From assembly GCA_010909165.1 (NCBI GenBank), contig MU008164.1:620001-684000 (forward strand): a DNA stretch of 64,000 nt, given 5' to 3'. The notes beneath the pieces were generated by a model. That model searched no databases. It was not told the DNA's origin and worked only from the letters and a program-made list of their open reading frames with translations. Positions 23,263 to 50,962 of this stretch are shown here, one piece after another. Source of the DNA: Anthoceros angustus. Its lineage: Eukaryota; Plantae; Anthocerotophyta. A program made the position numbers and the translations under genes. The first letter of the stretch is position 1. Each line of letters opens with the position of its first letter.

Positions 23263-26200
23263 GAGAAGATGCATGTGTTCCATGCTTCATGCAATCTCCA
23301 ATTAGAGAAGAATTGCTGCAGCCACTAATGGAGAGCTGCCTAGAGGACTCTTAGTGATCAGCGGTTTGCAAGAATCCACCGAGTTTGTAGCTGCCTAGTT
23401 GAGGCGAGCCTGCGGGATATATAAGGGCTAGAGCAAAGGTTTAATATCATTTAGTTCATTGTGCGTTGCAAGGCTCGTGTTGAGAGAGTTGTGGAGAGCT
23501 AAGCTGGTGAGCTTGTCCTTGAGTCAAGGGCAGGAGCCAATTGGGTGTAGATAGCCAAACTCAAGGAGCTAGTTGGGCATAGATAGCCAGACTCAAGTGT
23601 CTATTTCAATCTGTACAATGTGATTAAAGAGTGGTCTGCGAGTCGTCAACGTTCGACGGCGGGCTATTTGGAGCACGAGACGGCGGGCTATTTGGAGCAT
23701 TAGACTGCGGGCTATTTGGAGCTTAGTGCATCGTGAAATTCAAAGTGTCGGTAGTTATGCAAGTCTCTTGATGTGGAGTGAATTGGGCGAAGTCCTAGAC
23801 CGCTAGGAAGCGGCTGCTTCTTTACTAGCTGCATAGTAGGGGCCGTTACTATTATAATTATTTTAAACATTAAATAGTTATTTACCGTTCCTTACATATT
23901 TCTAAGGAGGAGACTGCAAGAGACGAGAACAAGGATCAGTACAAAGCGTCAACCCTGTCAGAGCTGGTGGACAAGCACTGAAAGACTGGTGCATAATTTT
24001 TTGGTTCGGGAAGAGAAGCATCCCAAGAGTCGATGAATAGATGAAAGATCATACGTGTCGGCACAGTGAGAAGCTGGCTATTTCTCATGAGCCCTGAACA
24101 AGACACCACGAGGGGACACACCGTAAGCATCCCAGCTTTCCTGCTTGTGTGTCTTGGTTGTCAAACTTTCACCAAATTCATATCAGGCAGTAAGGCAGTG
24201 GACTGTCATCCTGCAGGGTTGTTAATTGATGGCGTGTACAAGGATAATGTTCTTGCTGGAGGTTCAGCTGTAACCAGACTCCATTTCAGTGTCAAATGGT
24301 CGGAGGGTGAATAGCAAGCTGACTTACTTCCCAAGAATCAGTGCACTGAATCTGGAGCATGGGTTGTAGCAGCCTGCAGCGATGTGCAACAGTCGTAAGC
24401 ATACCTCACATACTGGTGCGGGTTCAAGATCCACCAAATTGTAAGCAAGAACAATCCGACTCACAGTATTTTGTCATCTGCTCCCAGTTCTGATGCCTTT
24501 CCAAAGCATAGACATGGAACTAGTCTGGAAGCCCTGTAAAAGGTATCCACTGGTTTGAACACAAGAATAAATAGGACACAGGTCCTCGAGAAGATGTTTG
24601 ACTGACCTCAAAATCGACAAATGCCTCACCTAGGCAAATGACGTCTCGCCAACGTATGAAATTGATGATTCCCTGTAGCCCCATGCGTCAGATGTGCCTG
24701 CTATCTTCAGCTGTGAACTAACCTTCTCTAAGAGGTCGTACAGCTGTTCATTTTGTGGGTGGCTTCGGTCTCCGACAAAAAGCTGTGTGCTTCTTGCTCA
24801 TGCTGAATCCAGCTCCGTCCGGGCTCTTTCCAAGCACGCTCCCTCTTTCTCAGATTCTCCACACTCTTTGCTCTGTCCGGAAGGCCAGCATCTGCATAGA
24901 TATGTGACATCAGCACATATGCAGCAGGATGCTTTGGCCGCATTGTAATGCACGATCAAAGGCCTGTTGTCCGAGCATTAAGTTTCCATGCTTCCGACAG
25001 GCACCAAGCACACACAACCACGTTGCCAGATCAGGCTCCATTGGCATTTTGGACAGCCAGTCCTCTAACAGAAGGAAGCGTCCTGCACGGCCAAAGGGAG
25101 GTCCTCGAGAAGATGTTTGACTGACCTCAAAATCGACAAATGCCTCACCTAGGCAAATGACGTCTCGCCAACGTATGAAATTGATGATTCCCTGTAGCCC
25201 CATGCGTCAGATGTGCCCTGCTATCTTCAGCTGTGAACTAACCTTCTCTAAGAGGTCGTACAGCTGTTCATTTTGTGGTGGCTTCGGTCTCCGACAAGAA
25301 AGCTGTGTGCTTCTTGCTCATGCTGAATCCAGCTCCGTCCGGGCTCTTTCCAAGCACGCTCCCTCTTTCTCAGATTCTCCACACTCTTTGCTCTGTCCGG
25401 AAGGCCAGCATCTGCATAGATATGTGACATCAGCACATATGCAGCAGGATGCTTTGGCCGCATTTGTATTGCACGATCAAAGGCCTGTTGTCCGAGCATT
25501 AAGTTTCCATGCTTCCGACAGGCACCAAGCACACACAACCACGTTGCCAGATCAGGCTCCATTGGCATTTTGGACAGCCAGTCCTCTAACAGAAGGAAGC
25601 GTCCTGCACGGCCAAAGAGGTCTAACATGCTGACATGATGTTCAATATCTGGAGTCATGCTATGAACTGCGCTCATGGACCTAAAGTACTCAAGACCCTT
25701 GTCCACTTCGCCTGCATGACTGCATGCAGAAATGAGCGATAAGAATGTGACCCCATTCGGATTGATGTTTGACACTTGCATTTTCTCATAACATTCCAGG
25801 GCCTTCAGTGTGAGTCCATGCTGAGCATATCCTGATAGCATTGCATTCCATGTCACGATATCTTTAGTTGCAAGATTGTCAAAGACCCTTTGGGCTGCAT
25901 CTAAGCTCCCACATTTGGCGTACATGTACACCAAGCAGCTACCCACAACCATATGAGATTCAAGCCCTCTTTCCTGAATCTGGGCATGAATTTGTATCCC
26001 CTGAGGTAGTGCTGAAACGCTGGCACATGCTTTCAGCAAGCACACAAACGTAGCATAGTCTGCCGCAATGACACCTTCATGTTCCATATCTGTGTACAGA
26101 GCAAGAGCTTCGTGGTTATGTAGATCATCTCTAGGTTTCACTTGAAGATGTGCAACAGTCGTAAGCATACCTCACATACTGGTGCGGAGTTCAAGATCCA

Positions 26201-27773: not shown

Positions 27774-30700
27774 TCAGATGTGCCCTGCTATCTTCAGCTG
27801 TGAACTAACCTTCTCTAAGAGGTCGTACAGCTGTTCATTTTGTGGGTGGCTTCGGTCTCCGACAAGAAAGCTGTGTGCTTCTTGCTCATGCTGAATCCAG
27901 CTCCGTCCGGGCTCTTTCCAAGCACGCTCCCTCTTTCTCAGATTCTCCACACTCTTTGCTCTGTCCGGAAGGCCAGCATCTGCATAGATATGTGACATCA
28001 GCACATATGCAGCAGGATGCTTTGGCCGCATTTGTATTGCACGATCAAAGGCCTGTTGTCCGAGCATTAAGTTTCCATGCTTCCGACAGGCACCAAGCAC
28101 ACACAACCACGTTGCCAGATCAGGCTCCATTGGCATTTTGGACAGCCAGTCCTCTAACAGAAGGAAGCGTCCTGCACGGCCAAAGAGGTCTAACATGCTG
28201 ACATGATGTTCAATATCTGGAGTCATGCTATGAACTGCGCTCATGGACCTAAAGTACTCAAGACCCTTGTCCACTTCGCCTGCATGACTGCATGCAGAAA
28301 TGAGCGATAAGAATGTGACCCCATTCGGATTGATGTTTGACACTTGCATTTTCTCATAACATTCCAGGGCCTTCAGTGTGAGTCCATGCTGAGCATATCC
28401 TGATAGCATTGCATTCCATGTCACGATATCTTTAGTTGCAAGATTGTCAAAGACCCTTTGGGCTGCATCTAAGCTCCCACATTTGGCGTACATGTACACC
28501 AAGCAGCTACCCACAACCATATGAGATTCAAGCCCTCTTTCCTGAATCTGGGCATGAATTTGTATCCCCTGAGGTAGTGCTGAAACGCTGGCACATGCTT
28601 TCAGCAAGCACACAAACGTAGCATAGTCTGCCGCAATGACACCTTCATGTTCCATATCTGTGTACAGAGCAAGAGCTTCGTGGCCAAGCCCATGGAGAGC
28701 ATATCCTGCGAGCATGGAATTCCATGTTACAACATCCTTTTTGGCTAAGTTGTCAAACACCTTGCGGGCATCATCCAAGCTCCCGCATCGTGCGTACATG
28801 TCCACCAGGCAGCTTGCAACAGCTAGATCAGATTCCAGACATCCTTCTTGAACCTGGGCATGCAACTGCTTTCCTCGATCTAATGCTCCAATGCCAGCAC
28901 ATGCTTTCAGGAGGCAAGCAAATGTAATATCACCTGCTGGAGTGATGCCCTCATGCTGCATACGTGCATGAAGCGCAAGGGCTTCTTCACCAAGGCCATG
29001 GTGAGCATATCCTGCCAGCATGACATTCCAAGTTACCACATCTCTTGTGGACATGTTGTCAAAGACCCTGCGGGCATCATCTAAGCACCCACATTTTACA
29101 TACATGTCCATCAGGCAATTGCCAATGACCAAATCAGATTCCAGTCCCCGTTCTTGTATCTGCAGATGCAGCTGCTTTCCCTGGTGTATAGCTGCAATGC
29201 TGGCACATGCTTTCAGGAGGCAAACAAATGTAATATGATCAGCTGTAGTGATGTTTTCCTCCTGCATTGTTGCATAGAGGTTGAGGGCTTCTTGACCCAG
29301 CCCATGCTGAGCATATCCAGCGAACATGGCATTCCATGTCACCACGTTTTTCTTCTCTAGATTGTCGAACACGTTGCGGGCGTTGTCTAATTTGCCACAT
29401 TTTGAATACATGTCCACCAAGCAGCTGCCAACAACAACATCACCTTGCATTCCCTGTTCCAAAATCTGAAAATGAAGATGCTTACCTTGATCTAATGCTC
29501 CGATGGATGAGCAAGCTCTGAGGAGGCACACAAAAGTAACATGATCAGCTGGAAATACGCCCTCAAGTTGCATACTTGCAAACAGAGCAAGGGCTTCTTG
29601 CCCGAGCCCATGTTGAGCGTATCCAGCAATCATCGCAGTCCAGGTGACCACATCCCTAAACACTAGCTTGTCAAACACGCTGCGAGCTTCATCCAAGCAC
29701 CCACATTTTGCATACATGTCCACCAAGCAGCTCCCAATCACCACATCATTTTCTAGACCTCTTTCTTGAATCTGAGAGTGAAGCTGCTTCCCCTGAACAA
29801 GTGTCGCACTGTTACCACATGCTTTCAAGAGGCACACAAATGTAACCTGGTCAGCTGGAGCGATGACCTCCTTCTGCATGCTTGCATACAGAGAGAGTGC
29901 TTCCAGCGCCAGGCCTTGCTGCACATATCCCGTGAGCATGGCATTCCAGGTAACAACATCTCTACTAGCTAAGCTATTGAACACAGTGCGAGCATCATCT
30001 AAGCTCCCACACTTTGCATACATGTCTACAAGGCAGCTCCCAACGAACTTATTGGGCTCCTCAGCACATCTCAGAACATCAGCATGGATCGTCCTGCCTG
30101 ATCTCAAATCCGATGTGTTAGCACATGCCTTAAGAACAGCTGCAAACACATGGTTGTCGGGCATGACAGTCGACTGCCGCATCCGCCAGTAAAACTGTAT
30201 AGCTTGTGCAGGCCGACCATGTTCAGCATAGCCCAAGATAATGGAAGACCACGAATGAGCATTTGGATCCACGAGTTTGCCGAATACCTGGAAAGCTTCC
30301 TGCAACTTCCCCTGAGAAGCGTACATGCGTATGATGTGGTTGGCCAAAAACCTGTCTGACTCATAGCCACATTTTACAGCAAGGGCGTGGATACCTCTGC
30401 CAAGAACCAAATCTTTCTTTGCAATACATCGCTTGAGAACCTCAAATAAGAGTGATCGGGGAAGACAAGATCCGTGCTGCACAATTAGCTCCAGAGCACC
30501 AACAGCTTGACTGAGCTCCCCTTCGTTAAGTTGTTTGCTCCAGCTTCCCCCTTCATAACCCACTTCAGCCTTCACTCTGCACGTTTCAGGGGACTGTCAC
30601 TGGAGCATTCGCAAGACACATCTGACAACTGTATACTACAGGCTACACGGCTATGCTTAGCTAAAGCATGTTCATCATGTGTTGACATCACACACATATG

Positions 30701-30950: not shown

Positions 30951-32880
30951 ATGTCCACATGCATTGGCGTACTACCGAGGATTTTTTTGAGGCTTGACTC
31001 AACAGTTCGTGCTCTCCTGCGAGTCATGGACCTCTTGTCGGGGAGGTGCTTAGACATGCGACAACCTGTTGGCTTAGCTGCTCCCGCTCAGCTGAGATCC
31101 ATGACAATGGAATTCCCGGTCGAGGAGAAGATTCTGGCGAATGAGCTTGGGTGGGATCACAGGCAACAGAAGAGGAGTTCCCGTTGGCCTGACTTCCAAG
31201 AGGTCCTCCGGGTAAACAAATTGCGCAAGTCAGCACCTCTCGATATGCTAATGGGTCGTGGTGCCCCTACGGATTCTGACCCTTGCAGACCTGGAGGTGC
31301 AGTAACGGCTGAAACAGTGGGCAGGTTATGTGAGCAGGGGCACCTCAGGGAGGCCGTTGAGGCTCTGGGAGTTTTGGTGCAGACAAGTGGTCTGATTTCA
31401 ACTGCTCTGGTTTATGCTGTCCTTCAGAAATGTGTGAGTAAGAGGGATCTGGTTCTGGGTCGGTGCGTTCATGGTCTCATTGTGAGAATTGGGTATGATT
31501 CGGACACGTTCTTGTGCAACCACATCCTGCGAATGTATGCTTCCCATACCAGGCTGCAAGAGGCTATGGATGTGTTCACCGTGGTTACCAAACCAGATGC
31601 CTTCATGTGGTCTTCCATTATATCTGCACATGTGCAACACGGAGAAGCCAAACTAGCAATCCGACTGTATTGTCAGATGCGCAGGTCAGGTGTGAAGCCA
31701 GATGGGCATGTGTTTGCAGCCGCCTTGCAGGCTTGTGCAAGGGGAGCAGACTTGAAAACTGGGCAACAAGTGCATGCTGATGTTTTGTCCAGTGAGGTTG
31801 AGCCTGATTTGTATATTTGCAATTGCTTGGTTGACATGTATGCAAAGTGTGGCAGCTTGGAAGATGCTCAACGAGTGTTTGATGGCCTTCCTCGAAAAGA
31901 TGTAGTAACGTGGAATGCCATGATAGCAGGATGCGCCCAGCAGGGAAAGGGTGAGGAAGCCCTTCGCCTGTATAGTGCTATGCAGGAACAAGGAGGTCTT
32001 GCACCCAGCCCTGTGACGTTTGTGTCTCTCCTGCAGGCATGTGCAGACGTGGCGGCTTTGCAAGTCGGAAGGCAGCTTCATGCGCAGATTGAGGAACAAG
32101 GGATGCAAGACCATGTGACTGTAGCTACCAGTTTGATGGAAATGTATGCAAAATCCGGAAGCATGCGCGATGCACAGCAGGTTTTTGATGCATTGCCAGA
32201 AAAAGATATAGTATCCTGGAGTGCGTTGATTGCAGGATACACCCGTCAAGGAGATAGTGAGGTGATATTTGACTTGATCCACAAAATGAGACAGGATGGC
32301 ATAGAGCCAGACAGGATCACATTCCTTAGCGTGCTAACAGCCTGCAGTCATGCAGGTCTAGTGAACAAGGGGCGAGAGTACTTTGAAGCTATGAGCAGAG
32401 AATATGGGATCAGTCCCACCGGGGAACACTTCTCATGCCTGGTGGATCTCCTGGGTCGTGCAGGCCAACTAGACGAGGCACTAGCGGTTGTGAAAACGAT
32501 GCCTGTACAACCTGACGCTGCAGTTTGGCGCACTCTGTTGGGTGCTTGTCGAAAGTGGTGCAATGTGGAGGTGGGACGCCATGCATTCTGTGAAGCAGTT
32601 AAGCTAGAAGAAAACAATCCTGCAGCATATGTGTTGATGTCAAACATATATACTGGTGCAGAGATGTGGCAGGATGCAGAGGGGATGCAGGCAAGGAGAA
32701 AAGGATTTGGGGTATGGAAGCAGCCAGGCCTAAGCTCTTGGACTGACATGGACGGACTGGTGCATTCTTTTTTGGTTGGTGATAAAAACCATCGGGAGTG
32801 AACGCATGTATGCAGGGCTGGAAAAGCTTCTGCACAAAATGCCGAGACTGGGTATGTGCCACATCTGGACTCCATATGTT
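30951..32880 (+). CDS. PLS-class PPR protein with 11 PPR motifs plus E1/E2/E+ (PG box)
   Basis: The 616-aa ORF (30951..32801) has PLS triplets and WKQPGLSSW...HSFLVGDKNH. The E+ continues in shifted frames (SERMYAGLEKLLHKM..GYVPHLDSIC), implying two probable indel errors. Confidence 0.9.
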
Positions 32881-33637
32881 GATGAGAAGGATTTATGTGC
32901 TAGCAGAACAAGCTGCACACCACCACTGACATATAAAGGAGGACCACCATATACACTTGCGCCCCTCCTGCAGACATGCAAGTGGGTACCCCAGCTTCAG
33001 ACGGGGAAGCAACAAATGCACTAGCCAGAGAAACAAAATTTACAACGTTGATGGTGAACAGCTATAGCATTGCCAACTTGAAGAATGAGGTGCACACTGA
33101 ACCTGCCACTCCAGATAGTTCGCTACTGAAGGTCGTTGCCTGTGAAGCTGCTACAGCGACGGCTGGCAAAATGCCTTCAAAGCAATCGAGTCCTCGGTGA
33201 TGGAAATAAGTAAGAGCCACTGAAAAGTACCATGACAGAAGTTCGTGAGATCTGGAGTTGCTAAAAGCTAGCCTATCACAATGCCTGAAGAAAGAACGGG
33301 GGACAGAAGAATGAAAGACGGGCGAGAACCTACCTCAGCAGTGGATTGACATATATGTGGATCCAAATTCTGAAGTGGACCACATTTCTTTCCTCTGAAT
33401 CTGGCGAGGATTGCTGATAGACCATTGCGGGGTGATAGACCATCCTCCCATTCCTCTACCGAGAAAAACTCAGCAATCTAACAAGGTCAGATGCAAAGTC
33501 AGGGACACGGCCTTATAAGATACAGCTCGATGACTTGCTTTAAAATTTGGCAACATCTTGAAGAAAGTTCAATTGAGCCATCTTGCAATCTCCTTGTGGG
33601 GCCAGAATCCTGGAAGGGATGGAGTCACAGCTTGCTG

Positions 33638-35935
33638 TCAATGCCTATCCAAACATGAACATGACCCATCCAGGAAACGATGCACTCTATGGGCATCTCT
33701 CACAATAATCTCTCGCTGTTCAAGACGTGACATGATCTTGGTGCTGCTGTGGCAGTCATTGCACATGCGAAGATTTTTTGTAACCAGCAAAGTTGTGCCA
33801 TCGGGGGTGTTCAGCAGACCATATGCCAAGGCAAGTTTTTCTGCATGTCCACACAAAGCATCTTCTTTCTCCTGCTCAGATACTGCCTTCAGCACCAACT
33901 CTGTTTGTGCTACATGCCCACCTTCCTCTTTCAACCTCCGGTTCACGCTTTCCAGCTTTGATGCGACGTCAGATCTCTCTTCTCCCACTGTGAACTCGTG
34001 CACCTTGTTTCCCACTTCAATGGACACCTTTGCAGGCTTCTTCCATGCATGTGCAGACTTCCTCAGGCTCTCTATTCGGTCTACATCATTCCACCTACTG
34101 GCATTTGCATAGATATTGCCTAAGAGGACATATGCGGATGCGCTTTCAGGTTCCAATTCGACAAGGTGGTCGAAGCAGCGCTTGCCCCGCTCGGAATCGT
34201 TGTGACTTTTGCAGGCACTTAACAGTGAGGTCCACCCCACCACATTGTTCTCACAAACCATAGTCCGCAATATAACCTCTGCTTCTGCGAGGTGCCCTGC
34301 CCGCCCAAGAAGATCAACCATGCAGTTATAGTGACACTCACTGGGCTCAATACCATGCTTCTCGAGCATCATCCTGAAACACCGCTGCCCTTCCTGGACC
34401 AGGCCTACGTGACTGCATGCTGCCAGAAGGCAGGTAAACGTAGCTTCGTTAGGCACAAAACCATCCTGATACATGTCTTCAAAACACTGCATAGCCTTCT
34501 GACCTTCGCCATTTTCAGCATAGCCATTAAGCAAAGCATTCCATGTCACAACATCTTTGGTGGACAAGTTGTCAAATACTCGACGAGCCTCCTCCATGCT
34601 CCCACATTTTGCATACATGTCAACCAAGCTGCCACCAACATACACCTTCGAATCTAGACCTCTTTCACGGGTCTGTGCATGAAGCTCTCTTCCCTGATGC
34701 AGTGCTCCAACATTAGCACATGCCTGAAGAAGGCAAGCGAACGTAACTTGATCAGCTGGACCGGCACCTTCCTGATCCATCTTCCTGTACAAAGCCAGTG
34801 CCTCGGCACCCTGTCCATGCTGCGAGTATCCTGCAATCATGGCATTCCAGGTAACCACATCTCTGTTGGGCAGTCTGTTGAACACTGTCCGAGCCTCTTC
34901 CAAGCTCCCACACTTTGAATACATGTCGACAAGGCAATTCCCAACACCCACATCAGTTTCCAGACCACTCGCACGAATCACCGCATGAAGCTGCTTCCCT
35001 TTTTGCAGATCTCGGAGTGTTGCACATGCATTCAGGAGGCACAAGAACGTAACAGGATCAGCTGAAGTCAGCCCTTCCTGTTGCATTCTGTCATATAGTG
35101 CCAGAGCTTCTCCCACGAGCCCATTCTGTGCATAACCAGAGATCATGGTCGTCCACGTCACCACATCCTTGTTCAGCAGACTATCGAAAACTCTGCGAGC
35201 ATCCTGCAACCGCCCACATTTCGCATACATGTTCACCAGGCTGCTGCCGACAAAGATGTTGGCCTTCATACCACTAGCCAGAACATCGGCATGCACCTCC
35301 TTCCCGGACACCAGATCCTCTGCACTGGAGCAAGCCTTGAGGACGGCCACAAACACGTGGCTGTCTGCCTTCACTGCTGAACTCCTCATCTGTCGGTACA
35401 GATCTATAGCCTCAATGGGCTGTCCATGCTGGGCATACGCCAAAATGATGGAAGACCACATGTAAGCATTTGGCCTGGCCACCTTTGTGAAGACGTGCCT
35501 TGCTTCCTCCAACCTCTTGTGAGAAGCATACATGGCAATGATGTGGTTAGCCAAGAACGGGTCTAACTCGTGCCCACTTCTTGCAGCAATAGCATGGATC
35601 CGCTTGCAAAGCAGCAAGTCCTTCCTGCATCTCTTCAGAACCCCATAAAACAGAGAGGTGTCAACATCAGAACCTCGCTGCACCAGGAGATCTAGTGCTT
35701 CAACAGCCTCCTTCAACCCTGCATCCTCACAACGTGTGCTCAAGGTTTCAGCCATCACATTGCCTGCATTCGTTGCCTTCCTGAGAGACCCACCATCATT
35801 TTTGTTCAGCCATAGCCCCTCCTTGAAGGTCTTGTACCTCAAGTCATGATGGTGAGCAGTTCTTTTACTTGCCTTGAAGTAGTACTGTATAGCACTAGAG
35901 GACAGTTGCTGCCACAAGAGCTCCTGCGCCACCAT
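33638..35935 (-). CDS. PLS-class PPR protein with 14 PPR motifs, E1/E2 and a complete DYW:KP domain ending DRH; candidate U-to-C RNA-editing factor, about 765 aa
   Basis: Uninterrupted ORF; the first ATG is at 35935 (the track start at 35995 is TTG). It has WKKPAKVSIEV in place of the PG box, the HAEKLA and CNDC zinc ligands, and terminal SCSCLDRH. Confidence 0.92.
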   Translation of the reverse strand: MVAQELLWQQLSSSAIQYYFKASKRTAHHHDLRYKTFKEGLWLNKNDGGSLRKATNAGNVMAETLSTRCEDAGLKEAVEALDLLVQRGSDVDTSLFYGVLKRCRKDLLLCKRIHAIAARSGHELDPFLANHIIAMYASHKRLEEARHVFTKVARPNAYMWSSIILAYAQHGQPIEAIDLYRQMRSSAVKADSHVFVAVLKACSSAEDLVSGKEVHADVLASGMKANIFVGSSLVNMYAKCGRLQDARRVFDSLLNKDVVTWTTMISGYAQNGLVGEALALYDRMQQEGLTSADPVTFLCLLNACATLRDLQKGKQLHAVIRASGLETDVGVGNCLVDMYSKCGSLEEARTVFNRLPNRDVVTWNAMIAGYSQHGQGAEALALYRKMDQEGAGPADQVTFACLLQACANVGALHQGRELHAQTRERGLDSKVYVGGSLVDMYAKCGSMEEARRVFDNLSTKDVVTWNALLNGYAENGEGQKAMQCFEDMYQDGFVPNEATFTCLLAACSHVGLVQEGQRCFRMMLEKHGIEPSECHYNCMVDLLGRAGHLAEAEVILRTMVCENNVVGWTSLLSACKSHNDSERGKRCFDHLVELEPESASAYVLLGNIYANASRWNDVDRIESLRKSAHAWKKPAKVSIEVGNKVHEFTVGEERSDVASKLESVNRRLKEEGGHVAQTELVLKAVSEQEKEDALCGHAEKLALAYGLLNTPDGTTLLVTKNLRMCNDCHSSTKIMSRLEQREIIVRDAHRVHRFLDGSCSCLDRH

Positions 35936-36971
35936 CGCGTCACGGCATACAATAGGCGATGGGCAATGTGATAGACCAAACTCGAAACTCTGCAATCAGA
36001 TTAATGTGAACCGCTGGTTTGTTTTTTTAATTTGGTAACTTCACATCAGATTTTAGTTGATCGTTTAAATTGTTTAAGAAAAGATCATATATGTAATATG
36101 TTATGTGGGAAGGTATGGAATACCGTTCTCGTCACGCGCCATTGTGTGTGTGACATTGTTTTTTTTTGCTGTACTATACTGAAATATGCTATGGCATCTT
36201 CTAGATTCTTTCGTATAATATATGTATAATATGTGGCACATCAACCTTGATAGGGTTGTACGTGAGCAAAAAACTTTTTATCACACACTTTTGGCCTGGT
36301 GTTCCTATCGTGTCATGGAGAAGATATGTTCTTTAGGGTTTTAGGATAACATCACCACACATACATGTTCATACACATGCGGCAGTGCACACATACACAA
36401 ATTTTTGGGTGAAAGTTTGGCCCGCATGCAGGCTTCGCTCTCGCCTGAAGGCAGCTTCATTCTCGCGCGACCGTGGCTACAACATGGAGGTAAGGCTTAT
36501 GCATCGTGCAGATAAGAGGCTCAACGTAGACACGGGTTTAGGGTCCCTTTGTGTCATTTCTCGTCACTCCCCAAGGCCTTCATCACATAGCATCTGATGG
36601 CATGGACAGGGAATCCAAGCCACTGAGGACAACCGTCATGCCTTATCCGGGCCATTAGAAGCATTCCAAGTGACACGCCAATTTCAAACAGAAAAGCCCA
36701 CACTTGGCCTCAGGCTTGCACAATTGCAGTCACAAAAAGCACATGTTCAAGTTTGCACTCCCACCTCATGGTGGGGAGCTCTCAAAACACCTTCCTACAA
36801 AACACCTACAAACCATGCTCCACTCAAGCTGGAAAGAGCTGTAGAGCAGGGCCACCATCCTCCTGTGCTCCAGAGCGTGGCCCCTGCGCTTGCGAGTTCG
36901 GAGGCTGCCTCGGCGCCGCATGAGGAGGAGGAGGCTGCAAGGGGGAAGAGGTGTGGACAACGGGCTCTCCT

Positions 36972-39900
36972 TGGGGTTAGGAAATAAGCTGGGTTTGTTT
37001 TTTTCGTAGGTATGGAGTGTAAAATAAGGCGGAAAAGGAGGAATAAGCCGCAGATGACTCCGGGACTATGCTCCGGAGTGCACTCGGACTCCGAGGTAAC
37101 GGACCCGGTGCACTCGAAGGACCCGGACCACACGGTCTGGGATAAGTCCGGACCCCACTCCGGTCAGAATGGGATCATCATGATGGGTAATTTAGAAGTT
37201 GGGGCGGAGGCGGTAGCGTGGGCCAGCCACAGATGGAAGGCGGGCATGCGAGGCGGGCATGCATTGCCGATGCCGTTATAGCGGTATTCACGCTCCATCT
37301 GCAGGCAATAAGGCGAGTAAGGCGGGCGTGGCGAGAAGTAAGCCATGCGAGCTCCCGGCGATTCTGACGGACAAGCCACCTCCGCGGCAGTTACCCAAGC
37401 GGCGAGAGGCAAGGCGGTCATTCTTCAAGCAACCGCGATCTTCGCATGCTCTCGCGCTCGAACACCGGCCCTCACGGCATTGTCTTTGTGATCGCTCGGG
37501 CACCCTCCGCGTCGCTCGACTTCGCGAAACAGCCCAGCCGGAGCGGACAATTGCGGAGCCTCACACTCGGCGGCGGGGCCCGGCGGGGTGGGAAGATGGG
37601 ACCTAAGAAGGCGGAGGTTTGGGAGCCATGGAGCTTGGTGGAGCATAACGCCGTCAAGCGCTACCGGACCCAGACGTGGTGGAGGAGGCGGGGGCTGGTC
37701 AAGGAATAGCACACAGACGTTTTCAGTGTCTGGACCTTGACAGTCGCCTAGTCCAGAATCGCCCGGAAGATGTTGGCACCAACAAGGAGGTTCGATCTAA
37801 GAGCCTTGAGAGGACCCTAGGAGGTGGGCCGTGGAGGTCCTGAGGCGTGTACAATCGTGGCGGAGGAAGTTGGGCGTGAGTTAGGCAGGCGCCACGTGGG
37901 CGGCCTGAATGGAAGGCAGCGGGCATGCACGGCGGGCGGGGCCGTAGCATTGCCGATGGCCGTTATAGCGGTATTCACGCTCCAGCGTGCGCGGCAGTAA
38001 GGCGGTAAGGCGGGCGTGGCGAGAGTAAGCCATGCGAGGCTCACAGCGATTCACGGACGAAGAGCCACCTCCTCCGTACAGTTGCCCGGCGAGAGGCAAG
38101 CGGTCATTCTTCAAGCAACCGATCTTCGCATGCTCGCTTTCGAGACACCCGGCCCTCTGGCGTTGTCTTTGTGATCGCTCGGGCACCCTCCGTCGCTCGA
38201 CTTGGCGAGGAAGCAGCCAAGGCGGACAATTGCGGAGCCTCACACTCTGGCGGGGCGGGAGGGGAAGATGGGACCCAAGAAGGCGGAGGTTTGGGAGCCA
38301 TGGAGCTTGGTGGAGCATAACGCCGTCACCAAGCGCTACGGACTTGGGCCGTGGGTGGAGGCGGGGGCTGGTCAAGGAGTGGCACTGGGCGTTTTCAGTA
38401 TGGACCTTGGCGTCGCCCTAGTCGGAATCGCCGGGGAAGATGTTCGGCGGCCAACAAGGAGGTTGATCTAAGAGCCTTGAGAGGACCCTAGGAGGTGGAG
38501 TGGAGGTCCTGAGGCGTACAATCGTCCGTGAGGAGAATTGGGCGTAGTCCGGAACCTCTCAAGGCCGGGGGAAGATAGGCGGCAAGGCCTGCTGGCAGGC
38601 GCAACGAACAACCAGCGGTGGTTGATGTCGGACTTCTTTGGGCCGGAGAGTGAGGCGATGGCAGGATCATTGTCCACTTGGAACATGCTCACCAAGGTAG
38701 ATCACCTTGGTGACAATCTGCTGAGTGTTCTGCATGTGCAGAGAGGAAGGAGGCGGGAGGAAGGATCATCTTCGCCGGGATCAATCGAGGCTCTGGGTGA
38801 GGTGTGAGAAGCCTCCTCCGTGTTGCTCGCGTTCTTAATTCATGTGGGGCACGAACCTCCCGAAGGAGGAGAGAGGAGCACGCACTCGGGAAGGGGCCGC
38901 CCCTGGGAGGCGGAGGAAGAGCGCGAGGTGGAGGCCCGTCCGTCCGGAGCAGAGCGCGGGAGGAAGGCGGAGGAGGAATCCCAGACTCCATACGTCTGGG
39001 CGGACTCCCTCGCCACCAGGGAAGTGTGGGAGGACATCCCTTCCCTCCTCCTACTTGCCCGGGCGGCCCAGGAGGAGGCGGCCCAGGCGGCGGCCGGCTC
39101 AGCTCCGAGACCGGCCGCCCGGCCGCGGCCCAGCGGACTCGTCGGGGACCGAAGAGGCGGAAGGCGGTGCCACCATAGCACCGGGCGGCGCCCATGCCCT
39201 TGCCCCTGCAGTGGCGAGGCGGGCGGTCTGAAGGCGGAAAGGCCGCCCAAGGCGGGAGGCCAGCGGCCCAGGCAGTCCTGTCTCCGGCCGGGAGAGGCAA
39301 AGGTCGACTCGAACCCCTCACCTCAAGGCCGGAGAAAGAGGCGGACAAAGGTGGCGGCCAAGAGGGCCAAGAAGGTGAGGCTCAGGACCTCGGCCTCGGG
39401 ACCTAAGGGTCTGATTAGGTCCAGAGCCAGTCCGGACTCACTCGGGCTGCGGTATGGAGGTCCTTGGCGGAAGAGATGCCCAGCGGACTTCTTGGGGGCC
39501 TCACTGGCGGCCGTGGAAGAGACACGGCGGGTCACAGCTCTGGTCATGGGCGGTATGCTCTGGGGACTCTGGGGCCGAAAACCCGGAGGTGGAGGCAACA
39601 GGAGGCGCATGGTGCTCCTCAGAGGAGATGGGCGGGAGGCGGGGAAGGCGGAAGTCCCGGCCGCATCGAGGAAGGAAGCAGCGGAGGCGGGCCGAGTCGG
39701 CGGTCAGAAGACGGACCAAGGTCCTCAGTTTATGTGGTGAGGCGGTATGAGAGGCCCAAGAGGTGAAGATCTCTGCGACGAAGGGGGGCGAGAAGGAGGC
39801 GGAAGGCTCATGACTGGCGGCAGTGGCTCGGACCAGTGACGGTGAAGGCAGCGAGAAGCGAAGCCGGCGTGGGATCACTATCGGCGTGATCGGGCCGGTG

Positions 39901-42008
39901 GAGGAGGCATGGGGTAGCCAACTGAAGGCGAGCAGTGGTGAGCAAGCAGTCGGCCGTGAGGAGGAGGCTGAGGTCCGGAAATGGGGACCTCGAGTGCAGT
40001 GCGGGAGGTAGAGGCGGCGGCGGAGGCTGGAGGAGCAGGATACCTTGGGCTGCAACTCCAACGCATCGAGGCGGGGGTTCTCAGAGAGAATCCAAGACTT
40101 CCGGGAGATAGGCGCCTCGGCTTGAAGCGCGGAGGAGAATAGGACAGTCCAAGGAGTTTGTCGCGGCTGAGTGGAAGCCGAGTCGGACGGGGATACCGGC
40201 CACTGGAGAAGGAAGTGGCGGACCTCGGGAAAGGATAAGCGGAGGAAAAGCTGGAGGAGAAGCGGTGCTCGTCCGATTCTGAGAAGCAGAGAGGAGCTCG
40301 GCTCCATGGCCGATAAGCTGGCGGAGGCGGAGGAGGAGGAGAGCGTCGGCGGCGAAGGCTGCGAGGTGTCGGAGGCCGCTTTGGTGGCATCGAGGGTCCG
40401 CTGCGGTTAGTAAGCACAGCAGCAGGCAGGTCGGCGGTGGGCGGCATGCCAGTGCCGACACCTCTGGCGGAGGAATACGGGTGCTCGGGCCCATGTGGAG
40501 GATTGGCAAGTCGATTGACTTTGCCTACTACCAGAGCTCCTCAAGGCTCGGAGGTCTTGCGCCACTCTGGCGGTGGCGGACTTCGGAAGGTCGGAAGGAG
40601 GCGAGGGAGGAAGGACCAGGGCAGCCACACAGGGACCCTAAGGTTTGATGACAACGGCGTGGCGAGGAGAGCGGGGGCAGACGGAGGAAGGGACCTGCCA
40701 GGTAGCACTCTGCACCTCCGGAAGGAAGGAGGAGGGCCTGGGAGGCCGTGGAAGGGGCGCAAGACTCGGGAACCAAGGGAGGCTCGGTGGGGTGAGCCGT
40801 GATCGCAGTGAGGCGAGCCGAAGAGCGTGGGTCGGACTTTGTCCGGACTCTTGAGGCCGATCCAGTCCGGCCCCCCAGAAGTCTGGACTTAGAGGTCAGG
40901 ACTCTAGTAGCGAGACGGACCACAGTCGGACTCCAAGGAAGGTTGGGCCAGGGCCGGACCCGAGGCAAGTCAGGCCCAGTCGAACTCCGGAAAGAAGGCG
41001 GACAGGACGGACCCGGAGGAAGGCCGGACCTAGAGGTGGGACTCGGAGTCGAGGCAGGTCTGAGGTCCCAAACTCGGGGAGTGGGGAGAGCCACCGATCC
41101 TGACGGATCCATCTCTTGGCGGGCCGCTATGGGGGCCAAAGATAAGAGAGGAGGAGGAGGACTTAGTGGTGGCCCGTTGTCGGGCCACCGCCGTGCGGCC
41201 AGCGGACCTCGGGGAGAGGTAGGAGTCCCGCCTCGCGGATCATCCGATTGGAGTCGCCCTGATCGTCGAGCTCGGCTTTGGGCCGCCCGGTGCCAAGGCG
41301 GAATCGGGGCCATCCAGCCCCACCACGGCGGAGATAGGAGAATAGAGAATAGTAGGCGGCCAATTAGGCGCGGTGACCTATTCGAATAGAGGTGTAATAA
41401 AGGCGCCGACCTTGGCGTAGTATAAGAGTGCACTGAAAGCATCTTTCTCTTGGTGTTGATCTGCGTCTTACAGCTCTTGAGTGCCTTCTTGTTACGAGTC
41501 TGAGTCATGGCGAGCTCCAGCCGGAGGCCGATCAAGGTCTTAGTAGCCGAGCCCTAACGTGTGTGGTGGTGTGTGTGGGAAGCGGCGCTGGACCCTTGCT
41601 CATCGGTAGCCCGGCGTTGGGCCGGGCCGGAGCAGTGAGCCGGAGGAACTCGGGAGGCGTCGAGCCGGACGGAGAGGCCAGTAGAGCTACGAAGGAGGTC
41701 CGGACCCTAGCCACCATTTCTTCCCAGACGATAAGTGTAGTGAGCGGTGAGAGGAGCGGACTAGATGGATGAGTGTGAACTTGGCGACACGTACGACGGG
41801 TCCTTAAGCGTTTGGCACTTGCCGGGCTGTCGGTGAACGCGTTAAGTAGTAGGGTGTGAAGCGATAAATAGGCGTGTTGAGAGACGGACATTAAGTGAGG
41901 TGAGGAATGATTGAAACGTAGCAAACAAAGCTGTCATTCTCTTGGAGCGGACCCCTTACTTCAACGACACGGGTTATGGCGGTGGCCATCGATGAAAGTC
42001 ACGCCACA
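36972..42008 (+). mobile_element. GC-rich element copy A: degenerate unassigned ORF region plus LTR-like end (40494-42008); internal ~675 bp tandem duplication at 37232-38520
   Basis: Homologous along its length to 46452-50962 (-). Both start TTGGGGTTA(G/A)GAAATAAG and share coding remnants such as KAEVWEPWSLVEHN / KLEVWEPWNLVERN. Confidence 0.7.
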
Positions 42009-45010: not shown

Positions 45011-46451
45011 GCGCAGCTCTGATGTCCAAGTCTTTGGTGCGCCCATCTGATTGTCTTTGGCCCAAAGTGCACCTCTCGGCCCGAAATGAGTTCATATGCC
45101 TTGTCCCCCTTCCATCTTCCCTTTCCTCTGTTTTGGCCCCAAGGCTTGGGTTCTGCCGCCATGGTTCGCACCGCTTCTTCTTACGGCCACACGCTTACGC
45201 CTCGAGCTCCATTCGACCAACTGCTTGCAGTTGGCCACCTCCTCCTCGCGCGCCCCAATCGACACTCAATCAAGGTTACGCTCCACATTAGTGTACCCAT
45301 GTGGGCCGAAATTACATCCAAGTCGTAGGTGATATGGTATGGCCTGCTCTCGTCAACCCCTTCAACATTTGTAACCCCCAACCCATCAAGCATCTATAAG
45401 CAATCTTATCGAACCCAACTGCAGCCACATAGCAACCACAATGTGCCATTACCATCGGAGTCTTCAGAGATTTTGCACCCCGACTGCTCCACAGCTCCCT
45501 CGTAATCCACTTCTCCACCTCGCCTCCACCGCCTCGGCCATGGTGGCGCATCGACCCCTGAGGGCGCCTGCGCCATTGCCTCCTTGCGAATCGCGGGCGC
45601 CGAGCCGCCTCCGCCTCCGCCCTCTTCACCTCCATCGGCCGCGATTATCGAAGGAGTGGGCAAGGGAGGAGCTTGCTGTGGAGTGTAACCTTGCGTCCAG
45701 GGACACCGTGAGGACCACATTTACCCTCAATGTCGTTGTAGTCTTGGGATTCGGGCTCCCAAGGGAATGATTTATTGCGAGAGGGCCTTCTTCTATCGTT
45801 TGACCTTCACCTATCTATTCGTCTACTACCACTCCCAATTTGTCTAACTACCGGATCTTTCCACAACCTCATAGCTTATTCCGACCTCCATTCCGGCTAC
45901 TCTGGCGGTGGCTCTCACCACTCTTGGGGTGGTTACCGACCTGCGGTGGGTCCCACAAACCCTAGCGACTCACCTCAGGCGCCGCAGCCGCGGGCCCCTG
46001 TCACGGGAGGCTCATGCTCCGTCGAGTTTATTCTGCACCCCACTTGCAGCACACACACACACGATTCCCTGGGACCAGCGTTCCCAGATCCCTCTCAGCA
46101 GCCACTTTTTGCAGGCCGCCTCACACATTAAGGAGGAATGATATTCCCTTGTACTCACCTTCTGGCAACCATCTTGGGATCCCCTCCTGATCGCAATTTC
46201 CCTTTGTTAGTCGCTTAGTTAGTTCTCCTCCCCATCTTCTCACACCTTGCCCACCTCGTCGGCGTCTGATTGCTCAGCCCTCTTTCTTCTCCTCCTCGAT
46301 TCGCTTCTTCCACTTCTCTCTCTCTCTCTCGGCCGCCCCTCGGGGCTTTCATTCCACACACCACATACTCTTAATTTTGGAACATAGTCGACGAGAAGGA
46401 AGGGTGGGGAGGAAGAATTCTCGGGCGTCACACTTACGATGCAAGCGAACT

Positions 46452-49400
46452 TGTGTGCGCGACTTTCGGTGCAGCCAGCCCGGCCAGGCGCGCACAATCC
46501 GTGTCGTTGTAGGAAGGAGTCCGTTCCCAAGGAATAGCGGGCTCCGTTTGCGGCGTTCGAGGCGATTCTCGTCTTACTGCGTCCGTTCGGTCCGCGCACA
46601 TTCCCTTTTCCGTCTAACTACTCGCCGCGTTCACCGGTATGGCCAAGCGTTTAAGGACCCGTTCGCGTCCGTTTCGTTCCGTTAAATCCTCACCTCTCGT
46701 CCGTTCCTCTCTCCTACACTTATCGGTCTTAGGGAAGGCGCGGGTTACCGCAGGACCTCCTCTCGTTCTCTGGGCCTCTCAGACTCTGCGCCCTCAGTCC
46801 CTCGGCTCACCGCGTTCAGGTCCGTTCGGCGGGCGGCTCTGGGCGAACCGGTCCCGATCACCCTCCTGCACACACCACAACACGTTAGGTCCGTCACGGG
46901 ACCACAGTCAATCTCTCCGGGGTCGTGCACCTTTCGGTGACTCGGGACTCACGTTAGCAGAAGACACACAAGGTGCGAGCAGCGGCATCAACACCAAGAA
47001 AGATGATTTATTGAGGCGTGACCCTCTTATACTACATGTCGGCGTCTTTATTACACCCCTATTACGGTGATGGCCCATTTCGGTATACTAATCGACGCCT
47101 ACCATCCTATTCCTCCCCTATCTCCCGTCGGCGGTGGGGTGGGAAGGTCCGGGTTCCTTGGGATTGGTGGTCCAATCTCCCGTCACAGCGATTCTGGCGC
47201 GCAATCGGATGATCCGGCGGGACCTCCTCTCTCCGGAATCACAGCCGGGTTGGGCTCGTGGCGGTCGGCGCCGTTACCAACGTCATCCTCCCAGCCTCCC
47301 GTGGGTCCCTCCGGTGGGGCCATTATCTGCTCCCCTAAGCGTAAGTCGAAGGGGCTCCTCCTTCTTTCGGTCCGGACCTCGAGGTCGGTCTCGACTCAGT
47401 CTGAACTCCAGTCGGTCTTATTCTAGTCGGTCTGGTCGGCCTCGTCTCTAGGTTCGGACCTCGGGGTCCGAACTTCGAGTCCGGTCCCAAGCTCCGGACC
47501 CCTTGTCATGGACCTCGTCTTGCTAGGTCCTCATCCCTACCCAGACCCTTGTCTTGGGTGGGTTGGCTCCTCATACCCCCTTCGGGCCGTCACCTCCCTT
47601 CTCCAGGCGGGTTGCGGTGAACTTACCACAGGGTCCGTTGCGTCTCGCTCCTCTTGAGGCTCTTCTCCCCAGCGTCGTCTCCAAGCAGGGGCCACTAGAG
47701 TCCCGTCTTTGTCCCCATGCCCTTCTTCCCCTCAGGCCTTCCGGTCGTCTATTCGGTAGGAGGCCTCTGCCGGGGCTCGGCGTGGTAATAGGCAAAGTCC
47801 GAATCCACTTGTTGGATTGCCTCTTCCACGTGTGCGGGCACCGTACTCCCTTAGCCATAGGTGCTCGGGGTGAGCGTCTTTGCCGCTTGTTGGACCACCT
47901 CCCACGGGTTTGATATGGGCGGGGGCTTCCTTGGTGCAGTGCCTCGGTCACCTCCCATAGCCGCTGTTGCTCCACTGCTCCAACTCCGTCGCTTGCTCCG
48001 GCCGACTTACCGCCATAGCGCGTTCCCCTTCCCTTCCTCAAGCTGGACGGCTTCTTATGCGCTTCCGTGCTCTCTCTCTCTGTCCATTACATTAACTCGC
48101 CATCTCCCTCTCAGACGGTCGGGCAACTCTGCGGGGCTGAGCCGCCAGGCCCTTCTCCATCTCGGCGTCACTCCTGTTCCATCGCCGTCACTCCGTCGCC
48201 AGCAGGTGGGGCCGCTATTTCCCGTTCGCGTTCGCGACCGTCCTGAGACTACCATTCCTCTCAATGGTAGTTTGGGCTGACTCAAGGTCTCCTTGCGGTC
48301 TTCCATCTCACTTCTTGCTCCACCTCACGGTGAGTCAGGAGATCCTCCATCTCCTTGTCGCGAACTTCACAGGCTGGTGGTCGCGCTTGCTCGCCTCCTG
48401 CTCCATCTTGAGGTGGGCGCTCTATCTCGCTCGAAGTCTTGGATTCTCTCGTTGAGAACCCCTTGCTGCTCCGGCGTCTTGGGTTGTAACTCCAAGGTGT
48501 CCTTCTCCTCCGCTCCTGCCTCCCTTCTACCTCCTGCTGCGCCACAGGGTCCCGATTTCCGGGTCTTGGCCTCAGTGTTCTGCAGCTCGTCATGCTTGCT
48601 TTGCTTGCTCGGCCAGTTGGCGTGGCTACCGCCTCCCTCCACGGTTCGATCACGCCGATAGTGATCGCGGTGCCTTCGTGGCTTGCCTCCTTGGCCACCT
48701 TCACAGGCTTCTCCGGCTTGGCTCTGGTCTGGTCGGGCCGCCTCGCGGTCCCGCCTCTCTTGCGCCCGGGCCTCTTAGCCTCTGCGCTACCCTCTCACTG
48801 CGAGGTCCTCGGCCCGCTTGGCCTCCTTAGCTTGGTGCTCCTCGGTGAAGGAATTTAGTCGGTCCTTGCGGATGGACGGACTTCCCTCTCGGCCTCCGGC
48901 GTTTCCCTTCCTCAATTCGGCCGAGCTTGGCCTTCCTCCTTGCCTCTGGGCCCCTCAGCTGCTCACGGAGGTACCATGCGCCTCGGGTGGCTTCTACCTC
49001 CAGGTCTTCTCGGCCATCCATGAGACCCCAAAGCATCGTCCATGGCGGTAGCAGGACCGTGTTTCTTCCACGGCCGCAGTGAGGCTCCCACAAAGTCCGT
49101 AGTGGGAGGCATTTGATCCGAGGACCTCCATACCCAGTCAGGAGTAAGTCGGTTGGGTTCTCGGACCTAATCGGGACCCTTAGGTCACGAGTCTTGACTC
49201 AGGAGCTTCACCCTCCTTGGCCCTTTTGGCGAGCTCCTTCTCGCCCTTTTTCTCACAGGGCTCGGAGGAGGTGAGGGGTCGGGAGCAAGCCCTTTTGCCT
49301 CTTCACAGCCGGAGGCAGGGCTCGGTGCTGCGTCCTCCTGCTCACAGGCGGCGTCCCTTCGCCCTCCTTCCTTCCTCGCTTCTTGCCACTCAGGTAGGCG

Positions 49401-50962
49401 GTAAGGGGTCTTGGCACCGTCGAGGTCTGCGTTGGTCCATCTTGCGTCTCTTGGTTCCCTCCAGTCGGGGCTCAGGTGTGGTTGTGGTGGTGGTGGGCTA
49501 TTGGGTCGGGCCGCCTCTGCTTGGCTCGGGGGGCACCGGGAGGAGGAAGCGATTTCCTCCCATACTTCCACAGGTGGTGAGGGGTCCGTTCACGTATGGA
49601 GTCGAATTCCCTCGATCGTCCTCCTCCGGGTCGTTTGGCCTTGGTCGGCCTCCCACCTCGGGCGCCCTTGCGCTCCACTTGGCGGGCCTCAGTCCTTTCG
49701 GGCGCCCGCTCAAGCTCTCCCTCCTTGAGGAGCTCGAAATGTCCCCATACATGGATCGGGTATGGGGCGGCCAGATGGCGAGGCTTCTCGCTCCGAGCTT
49801 GCGGGCCTCAGCTAAGGCGAAGATAATCCTTCCCAGTCCGCCCTCTTCCCAGCGCGCGCATGCGAGAATACCAGCAGTTATCACCAAGGTGATCCACCTT
49901 GGTGGCGAGTTCAATGGACAATGATCCGGGCTACCGCCCTTACTCGGATCCAGCGGTCGGATATCAACGTTGGTGGTCCTCTGCGTTCGAGCCTCGGCAT
50001 CGCTGTTGCGGCCCTATCTTCCCCGCCTTGAGGGCTCGGCACCACCCCTTCTTCCTCCTTTGGGCGGTTGTAGGCGCCCTCGGGACCTCAAGGTCCATCG
50101 CCTCGGGTCCTCCGGAGGTTCTTGGACCGCACCTCCTTGTTGACCGCCCGCCAACATCTTGGGCGAACTCCGGACGGTGTGTTGTCGAGCGTCGGACCGT
50201 GGAACACATCCGGTGCCACTCCTCCACTAATTCTCCGCTTCCTCCGGCCGGGCCCAAAGTCCGGATAGCGCGGGTCACAATGTTGCGCTCCACGAGGTTC
50301 CATGGCTCCCAAACTTCCAGCTTTTGGGTGCCATCGCCTTCGTCTCCCCTTGTCGCTGGCTGGCGGCGGAGTTCGCGCACGTCGCCCTCCTCGCCCGCGT
50401 TCGCTTCTCCAACCCGGCGGTGAACTACGCTCGAGAAGCTTGGGCGCTCAAGAGATAAGCGAGCGGGTTGCGGGCGCAAGAGGCTGCGTGTCTCGGGCGG
50501 AAATGACCTTCCCCTTGACGCGCCTTGGGAGTAACGGCGGGAAGGCGCCTCTTCCACATCGTAGCGCGAGTGCATGGCTTAGCCGACCTTCGCCTCGCCT
50601 GCGGCCTTCGCGCGCGTACTACGGCCTTCGCCGCGCGCGTCAGGCGTGAATACTGCCTGCGGCCCAGCAGGTCGGTCTGGCGGTGCATGCCGACCTCCAC
50701 TCGGGGCCGTCCGTGGCGCCGCCTGTCGTCCTCACGGCTCAACTTCTAAGTTACTTTCCTGGCGTACTTATCTGCTTGGACACAGGTGGGTCGGACTTAT
50801 CCGTTACCCGGCGTAGTCGGTGCACCGCCATAGTAGGTCAGTCGTTGCCTCCAGTCCGGAGTATACTCGGTGCGGTCAGTGCTATCCGCTTATTCCTCCC
50901 TTTTCCGCCTTATTTTATCCTCCGCTCCTGAAAAACAAAACCCTACTTATTTCTTAACCCCA
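46452..50962 (-). mobile_element. GC-rich element copy B, inverted relative to copy A; LTR-like part at 46452-47573
   Basis: The reverse complement matches copies A and C. The LTR-like part starts TGAGGAGCC after a purine-rich stretch and ends GAAAGTCGCGCACACA. Confidence 0.7.

Follow-up and report, generated by a model that had tools for sequence, protein, structure and literature searches.

Positions 33638–35935 on the minus strand of the window, as we call the whole 64,000-nucleotide stretch of DNA analysed here, raise the question of whether a natural factor for U-to-C RNA editing is encoded there. The original prediction was made from the letters alone. It described an intact PPR protein of the DYW:KP class and DRH type, proposed that it is an as yet unassigned U-to-C editor, and suggested profile-HMM classification and a search for RNA-seq expression among its checks. 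DYW:KP proteins are found only among hornworts, lycophytes, and ferns, and they are the accepted candidates for U-to-C editing (PMC9478123, PMC11845758, PMC13386178), which agrees with the prediction's statement that the class occurs in the lineages with this reaction. They fit U-to-C sites by the PPR code, and those of hornworts fall into two subgroups, DRH and GRP (PMC9478123). We asked whether the gene is real and transcribed, where its C-terminal domain belongs, and what the protein is likely to do.

Open reading frame analysis found a single uninterrupted frame of 765 codons on the minus strand at 33638–35935, with its first ATG at 35935 and its stop codon at 33638–33640, just as had been predicted. 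The frame extends to 33638–35995 if it is read from a TTG. The complete coding sequence (33638–35935, minus strand; 765 residues plus the stop) contains no intron. Pfam matched the translation to PPR/PPR_2 (E about 1e-71), to the E_motif at residues 578–635, and to DYW_deaminase (PF14432) at residues 673–763 (E 2.9e-35). An open frame of 2.3 kb with these matches excludes a chance origin.

We then compared the locus with contigs from run X1, which derives from the same source sample as the DNA-sized run X2 and whose contigs total only 30 million letters. Contigs from X1 matched 33334–33755, 33749–34035, 34304–34616, 34603–35243, and 35222–35724 with zero differences; among the matches listed, no exact X1 piece fell in 34036–34303 or 35725–35935. 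The frame is thus not an accident of assembly over the covered parts, and the prediction's statement that it has no frameshift is borne out over most of the gene. One X1 contig, at a depth of 15.7, spans 33334–33755 and 33100–33219 and skips the 114 nucleotides between them. The skipped segment (33220–33333, minus strand) is present in the DNA runs and has the GT-AG boundaries of an intron (GAG/GTAGGT...TTTTCAG/TGG). At 33238–33274 the depth was 0 in X1, whereas it was 9.85 in X2. Because X1 lacks a GT-AG intron that is covered in X2, the DNA run from this sample, X1 is RNA, and the exact contigs that lack this intron show that transcription proceeds from the minus strand and that the transcript is spliced. 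The proposed check for RNA-seq expression therefore came out in favor of an expressed gene. For three bins in X1, depths of 11.3, 9.4, and 15.7 were predicted and depths of 11.1, 9.42, and 15.7 were observed. The depth of the transcript in X1 is similar to that of its flanks.

The same contig defines the 3′ end of the gene model. The first part of the 3′ UTR (33334–33637, minus strand) lies within the exact X1 contig over 33334–33755, and the second part (33100–33219, minus strand) is covered by X1 to the end of the stretch that was examined. Judging from the size of the X1 contig, the second part should continue as far as approximately 32759 and so overlap the end of the neighboring PPR gene in antisense. 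The intron begins 304 nt past the stop codon, a position that might subject the mRNA to nonsense-mediated decay.

At the 5′ end, the X1 depth stops approximately 18 nt above the ATG, with the end of the transcript contig at about 35953, and the DNA upstream of 35935 is AT-rich and contains stops in every frame. These observations make the ATG at 35935 the likely start codon and a single-exon coding sequence the likely gene model. We also considered an upstream exon joined through the acceptor-like ttgcag at 35990–35995 and rejected it, given where the transcript contig ends and the upstream stops in all frames. The likely 5′ UTR contains a two-codon upstream reading frame, ATG CCG TGA (35940–35948, minus strand), 13 nt before the start codon.

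A related organism carries a copy of the gene that is approximately 96% identical. Its coding pieces differ at 27 of 658, 10 of 334, and 30 of 683 letters and contain no indels, whereas 656 letters of its 3′ flank include 50 differences and 16 gap letters. Gap-free coding pieces beside a gap-rich flank suggest coding constraint, as read from difference counts and not from a dN/dS ratio. Six of the nine coding differences that were classified are synonymous, in a sample that is small, biased, and drawn partly from a paralogue. In this organism, too, a DNA contig continues through the intron, and a presumed RNA contig ends at about 33340.

To place the C-terminal domain, we built a tree from 112 non-identical DYW domains that had been extracted from homologue searches. 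The 44 KP-like rows (with HAE, HCE, or HVE) are split by a branch with 100% support from 68 HSE rows, nearly all of which end in DYW or DFW. The domain groups with the KP-like rows and not with DYW:PG proteins; clustering with the latter was an outcome that the prediction had named as one that would count against it. It lies inside a clade of 33 rows (31 HAE and 2 HVE) with 97% support. DRH is the end of each of its five nearest rows, of which P0002 (81% identical in the domain) is the closest, and four rows that end in GRP form a subclade within the same clade, also with 97% support. Profile HMMs were made from 30 KP rows and 25 PG rows, with the protein left out of both. The protein scored 233.4 bits with the KP profile and 156.5 bits with the PG profile. 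This difference, +77, is also the median for true KP rows, whereas PG rows range from −71 to −98. At 13 columns that are conserved in both classes and differ between them, the protein has the KP residue 12 times and the PG residue never. The tree, the profiles, and the 13 columns together place the domain in the DYW:KP class, DRH subgroup, as the original prediction had it.

The C-terminal part of the protein reads ...AHAWKKPAKVSIEV...LCGHAEKLALAYG...LLVTKNLRMCNDCHSST...GSCSCLDRH*. Canonical DYW:PG proteins carry a PG box and HSE and terminate in DYW or DFW; this protein has KP, HAE, and DRH in their place. The DYW:KP domain (residues 632–765; 33641–34042, minus strand), supported by the tree, the profile HMMs, and the column comparisons, opens with KKPAKVSIEV in place of the PG box, as had been noted. 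Counted from the K of KP through the last residue, it is 133 residues long. This is within the 132–133 residues of DYW:KP domains, which lack the xHP residues of PG-type domains; these residues are missing here, and the alignment has a gap at the PG-specific proline column. The HAE motif (33839–33847, minus strand), present as CGHAEKLA, supplies the zinc-binding His65, the KP-specific Ala66, and the catalytic Glu67, and is followed by Lys68. As the middle residue of this motif, 100% of KP rows have Ala and 100% of PG rows have Ser. At alignment column 81 the protein has Ala, as do 93% of KP rows, and 100% of PG rows have Gly there. Lys88 (33776–33778, minus strand) lies in TKNLRM, and its role is known from studies of designer proteins (PMC11845758, PMC11713852). 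The CNDCH zinc motif, Cys93 to His97 (33749–33763, minus strand), contains the intact CxxC that had been predicted, and the terminal tripeptide DRH (33641–33649, minus strand) is the signature of the hornwort DRH subgroup and of the nearest relatives. The HAE motif and the DRH terminus were likewise read correctly from the start.

The residues on which catalysis would depend are all in place. The deaminase-invariant H, E, C, C, H, H, C, and C are kept, and with them both zinc sites; Glu67, Lys68, Lys88, and every zinc ligand are present. Across 69 columns at which 85% or more of the KP rows agree, the protein departs from the KP consensus at three, none of them catalytic: a Gly in E2 that is invariant in 30 KP rows is Ser, Ala5 is Val, and Ser26 is Ala.

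An AlphaFold model of residues 565–765 had a mean pLDDT of 95.9, and Foldseek matched it to 9kfx, 7o4e/7o4f, and 7w86. The model superposes on 9kfx, a synthetic PPR-DYW protein with RNA, with a TM score of 0.87 and an rmsd of 2.2 Å, and OTP86 and DYW1 also superpose; the sequence match to 9kfx has an E value of 3e-63. The E1-E2-DYW module is thus confidently predicted to adopt a deaminase-like fold. An exact-sequence look-up of the 765-residue protein found no identical protein on record. In a full-length homologue search, whose results were dominated by long PPR proteins, the best identity was 58%, and a search for pieces of an orthologue with a 219-residue fragment found nothing above 56% identity; neither search turned up a recorded orthologue.

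A residue-by-residue manual motif parse covers all 765 residues and divides the protein into a 59-residue N-terminal region, the PPR array, E1, E2, and the DYW domain. By Pfam and the parse, the array (residues 60–564; 34244–35758, minus strand) consists of four P1-L1-S1 units followed by P2, L2, and S2, and the first P1 and first L1 are short, at 33 residues each. The parse recognizes 17 PPR-like motifs in canonical order. The E1 and E2 motifs (residues 565–631; 34043–34243, minus strand) were defined by Pfam, the parse, and the AlphaFold model. A PLS-type array that leads through P2-L2-S2-E1-E2 into a C-terminal DYW-type domain is among the features of DYW:KP proteins.

The N-terminus is less regular. 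Alignment to relatives identified a degenerate PDF-type motif at residues 4–45 (35801–35926, minus strand), directly after the start codon. In P0008, P0013, and P0015, the corresponding segment, ...LW..F...W.D.R..K....PDFRHK...E.LWL, lies 50–90 residues from the start; here YYFKASK stands for W.D.R..K, HDL for PDF, and RYK for RHK. Because the start codon abuts the motif, which in the relatives is preceded by 50–90 residues, a targeting presequence is not evident. With this likely start codon, no space for an organelle presequence remains ahead of the motif. A better copy of the PDF-type motif, WDHRQQKRSSRWPDF, occurs at 31101–31340 (plus strand) in the neighboring gene at 30951–32801.

We took the fifth and last residues of the P and S motifs as the code residues, and the base calls for the array follow the published PPR code. 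The register, with S2 at −4 and E1 at −3, is established (restated in PMC9478123). On this register, the predicted bases are G at −18 (TD), a pyrimidine at −16 (NN), G at −15 (SD), −13 (SD), and −12 (TD), U at −10 and −9 (ND at both), G at −7 (GD), and a pyrimidine at −6 and −4 (NN at both). The code residues of L2 and E1 are both TS and would favor A, weakly. The site predicted in this way, 5′-GnYGnGGnUUnGY(a)Y(a)nn[U]-3′, extends from −18 to 0 and has few specified bases.

The gene sits in a cluster of PPR genes. On the minus strand, 27774–30575 holds an intact 933-residue PLS-PPR gene of the PG type (KEPGRSW) that terminates as an E+ protein shortly past the point where the DYW region begins, and it is 50% identical to the DYW:KP gene over the shared N-terminal array. 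Two partial tandem copies of its 3′ end, nearly identical to each other in sequence (...ERAWKEPGRSWIQHEQEAHSFL...), lie at 25248–26168 and 24728–25203 (minus strand), and this part of the window (24728–26168) looks like the remnants of a segmental duplication. On the plus strand, 30951–32801 encodes a 616-residue PG-type PPR protein with a stop at 32799–32801, just past the PG box. In the same frame past 32801 a recognizable remnant, ...ETGYVPHLDS, occurs at 32850–32873 and is followed by two stops. The sequence would fit a DYW gene that has decayed or an E+-like gene that is truncated, and the stop may be either real or an assembly error. Elsewhere in the window, 38000–42000 and 46000–52000 have a G+C content of 0.59–0.65, a strong AT skew, and long open frames on both strands; Pfam searches at 38820–39740, 40528–41535, and 49217–49924 returned no match.

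The DRH- and GRP-type relatives and the E+-rich cluster point to a hornwort host, and we infer that its lineage is one in which U-to-C editing occurs. We conclude that 33638–35935 is a transcribed nuclear gene for a PLS-PPR protein of the DYW:KP class and DRH subgroup, and its membership in the DYW:KP family is, in our view, practically beyond doubt. It is an ordinary new member of an already known family. The original prediction had remarked on the intactness of the frame in a noisy assembly. Such intactness is nothing special, and published hornwort genomes hold from 1,600 to 2,300 PPR genes each (PMC13386178).

The best overall explanation is that the protein is a site-specific organelle RNA-editing factor of the DYW:KP DRH subgroup, which we consider probable. 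In a transcript of the plastid or the mitochondrion, the array would occupy approximately 17 nucleotides immediately 5′ of a single target, placing S2 at −4, E1 at −3, and E2 at −2, and the DYW:KP domain would convert the target uridine to cytidine. In the published model of the reaction, this would proceed at the zinc site (H65, E67, C93, and C96) through attack by Lys88. U-to-C editing in vivo is the most likely function that the sequence suggests, with a likelihood that we place slightly above even.

The evidence for this activity comes from designer proteins. The prediction had cited synthetic DYW:KP proteins as showing U-to-C activity, and this holds for three of the seven designs studied by Ichinose (2022): KP2 and KP3, which are GRP-type, and KP6, which is fern-type (PMC9478123). 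It does not hold for KP1, which was designed mainly on DRH proteins and gave 0% editing of U and C targets in both E. coli and HEK293T cells (PMC9478123). No activity has therefore been demonstrated for the DRH subtype. In the literature searched, we found no native DYW:KP protein that is tied to an editing site and no site assignment for this one. The protein thus stands as unassigned, as had been proposed, but given the result with KP1, the prediction was too confident in passing from a natural DYW:KP protein to a natural factor for U-to-C editing.

The inactivity of KP1 is also a hint that the DRH subgroup may differ in function. DRH proteins may need a partner or a particular RNA context, or may work in the other direction, and so differ from GRP- and fern-type KP proteins; we regard such a difference as unlikely. 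If the DRH subgroup does differ, an intact, expressed gene with a readable PPR code would be a good reagent for studying DRH-type function, and its product might be the first native factor to be linked with a particular U-to-C site.

A related alternative, which we consider rather unlikely, is that the protein binds RNA without autonomous catalysis, either because it needs a partner or because it stabilizes RNA or marks sites at which catalysis occurs in trans. KP1 was inactive in two heterologous hosts in which GRP- and fern-type designs worked, and the same cluster contains truncated E+ type PPR genes, a type that elsewhere in plants depends on DYW proteins in trans. However, KP1 is a consensus design, and its inactivity may be a fault of the design. 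In addition, all of the zinc ligands and catalytic residues are conserved and only 3 of the 69 family columns differ, which would be unexpected if catalysis were dispensable.

An active factor could also carry out C-to-U or bidirectional editing despite its KP-type domain, a possibility that we judge improbable. The direction of editing depends on few positions: KP6 edits in both directions, and single or triple substitutions switch its direction (PMC11845758). In triple mutants of KP6, G64, V113, and H133 bias the enzyme toward C-to-U, and Cys6, A116, and V119 bias it toward U-to-C (PMC11845758). Lys88 is essential for U-to-C editing by designer KP proteins, and its loss flips KP6 to nearly complete C-to-U editing (PMC11845758, PMC11713852). 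Changing HAE to HAA abolished U-to-C editing, and changing HAE to HSE abolished or lowered it (PMC9478123). Precise measurement of U-to-C editing is reported to require treatment with proteinase K, as the enzyme becomes crosslinked to the RNA that it edits (PMC11845758). The 765-residue protein has G64, V113, and H133 as well as A116 and V119, and it has Ser6 in place of Cys6. Apart from Ser6, however, these residues are the natural KP consensus, and so they do not decide the direction of editing. Furthermore, HAE, Lys68, and Lys88 are kept, and only lineages that have U-to-C editing contain KP genes. KP1 bears on both sides, as it showed no U-to-C editing but no C-to-U editing either.

It is similarly improbable that the gene is a young, redundant, or mis-targeted paralogue that is open and transcribed but decaying and without current function, as the degenerate N-terminal motif with no evident presequence, the Ser at the invariant E2 Gly, and the 3′ UTR intron far behind the stop might suggest, because the 2.3-kb frame is still open, its transcript is present at a depth similar to that of the flanks, the coding pieces of the related copy lack the indels that are frequent in its flank, and most of the few classified coding differences (a small, biased sample with a paralogue mixed in) are synonymous. 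We therefore retain the reading of the protein as a site-specific editing factor, probably for U-to-C. Knowledge of U-to-C editing still rests on designer proteins, and DRH, the commonest hornwort subtype, lacks demonstrated activity. A gene of the DRH type that is intact and transcribed and has a clean PPR array offers a usable candidate for a test, but by itself it changes nothing in the field.

Among known systems, the protein most closely resembles the hornwort DYW:KP proteins of the DRH subgroup described by Gerke et al. (2020) and Gutmann et al. (2020) (as summarized in PMC9478123). It shares with them the PLS-PPR array with P2-L2-S2-E1-E2, the 133-residue domain, the KP box, HAE, Lys88, Met92, CxDCH, and the DRH end, and its nearest relatives in the subgroup, all DRH-ending, are 72–81% identical to it in the domain. 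It differs from them in having Ser6 for Cys6, Val5 for Ala, Ala26 for Ser, and Ser for Gly in E2, and in the degeneracy of its N-terminal PDF-type motif. The designers KP2, KP3, and KP6 (PMC9478123, PMC11845758) have the same class of domain, with HAE, CxxC, Lys68, and Lys88. KP2 and KP3 are GRP-type, and natural GRP-ending proteins form a subclade within the clade of the 765-residue protein; unlike these designers, the protein has the DRH end of its own subgroup, whose designer, KP1, was inactive. The canonical DYW:PG factors for C-to-U editing, OTP86, DYW1, PpPPR56, and the synthetic 9kfx, are more distant, with 38–48% identity, but agree with the model in fold (over E1-E2-DYW, the TM score to 9kfx is 0.87) and in their zinc sites. 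In contrast to these factors, the protein has KP for PG, HAE for HSE, Met92 for Val, Val119 for Phe, DRH for DYW, and the three-residue deletion of xHP, and it lies on the opposite side of a fully supported split in the tree.
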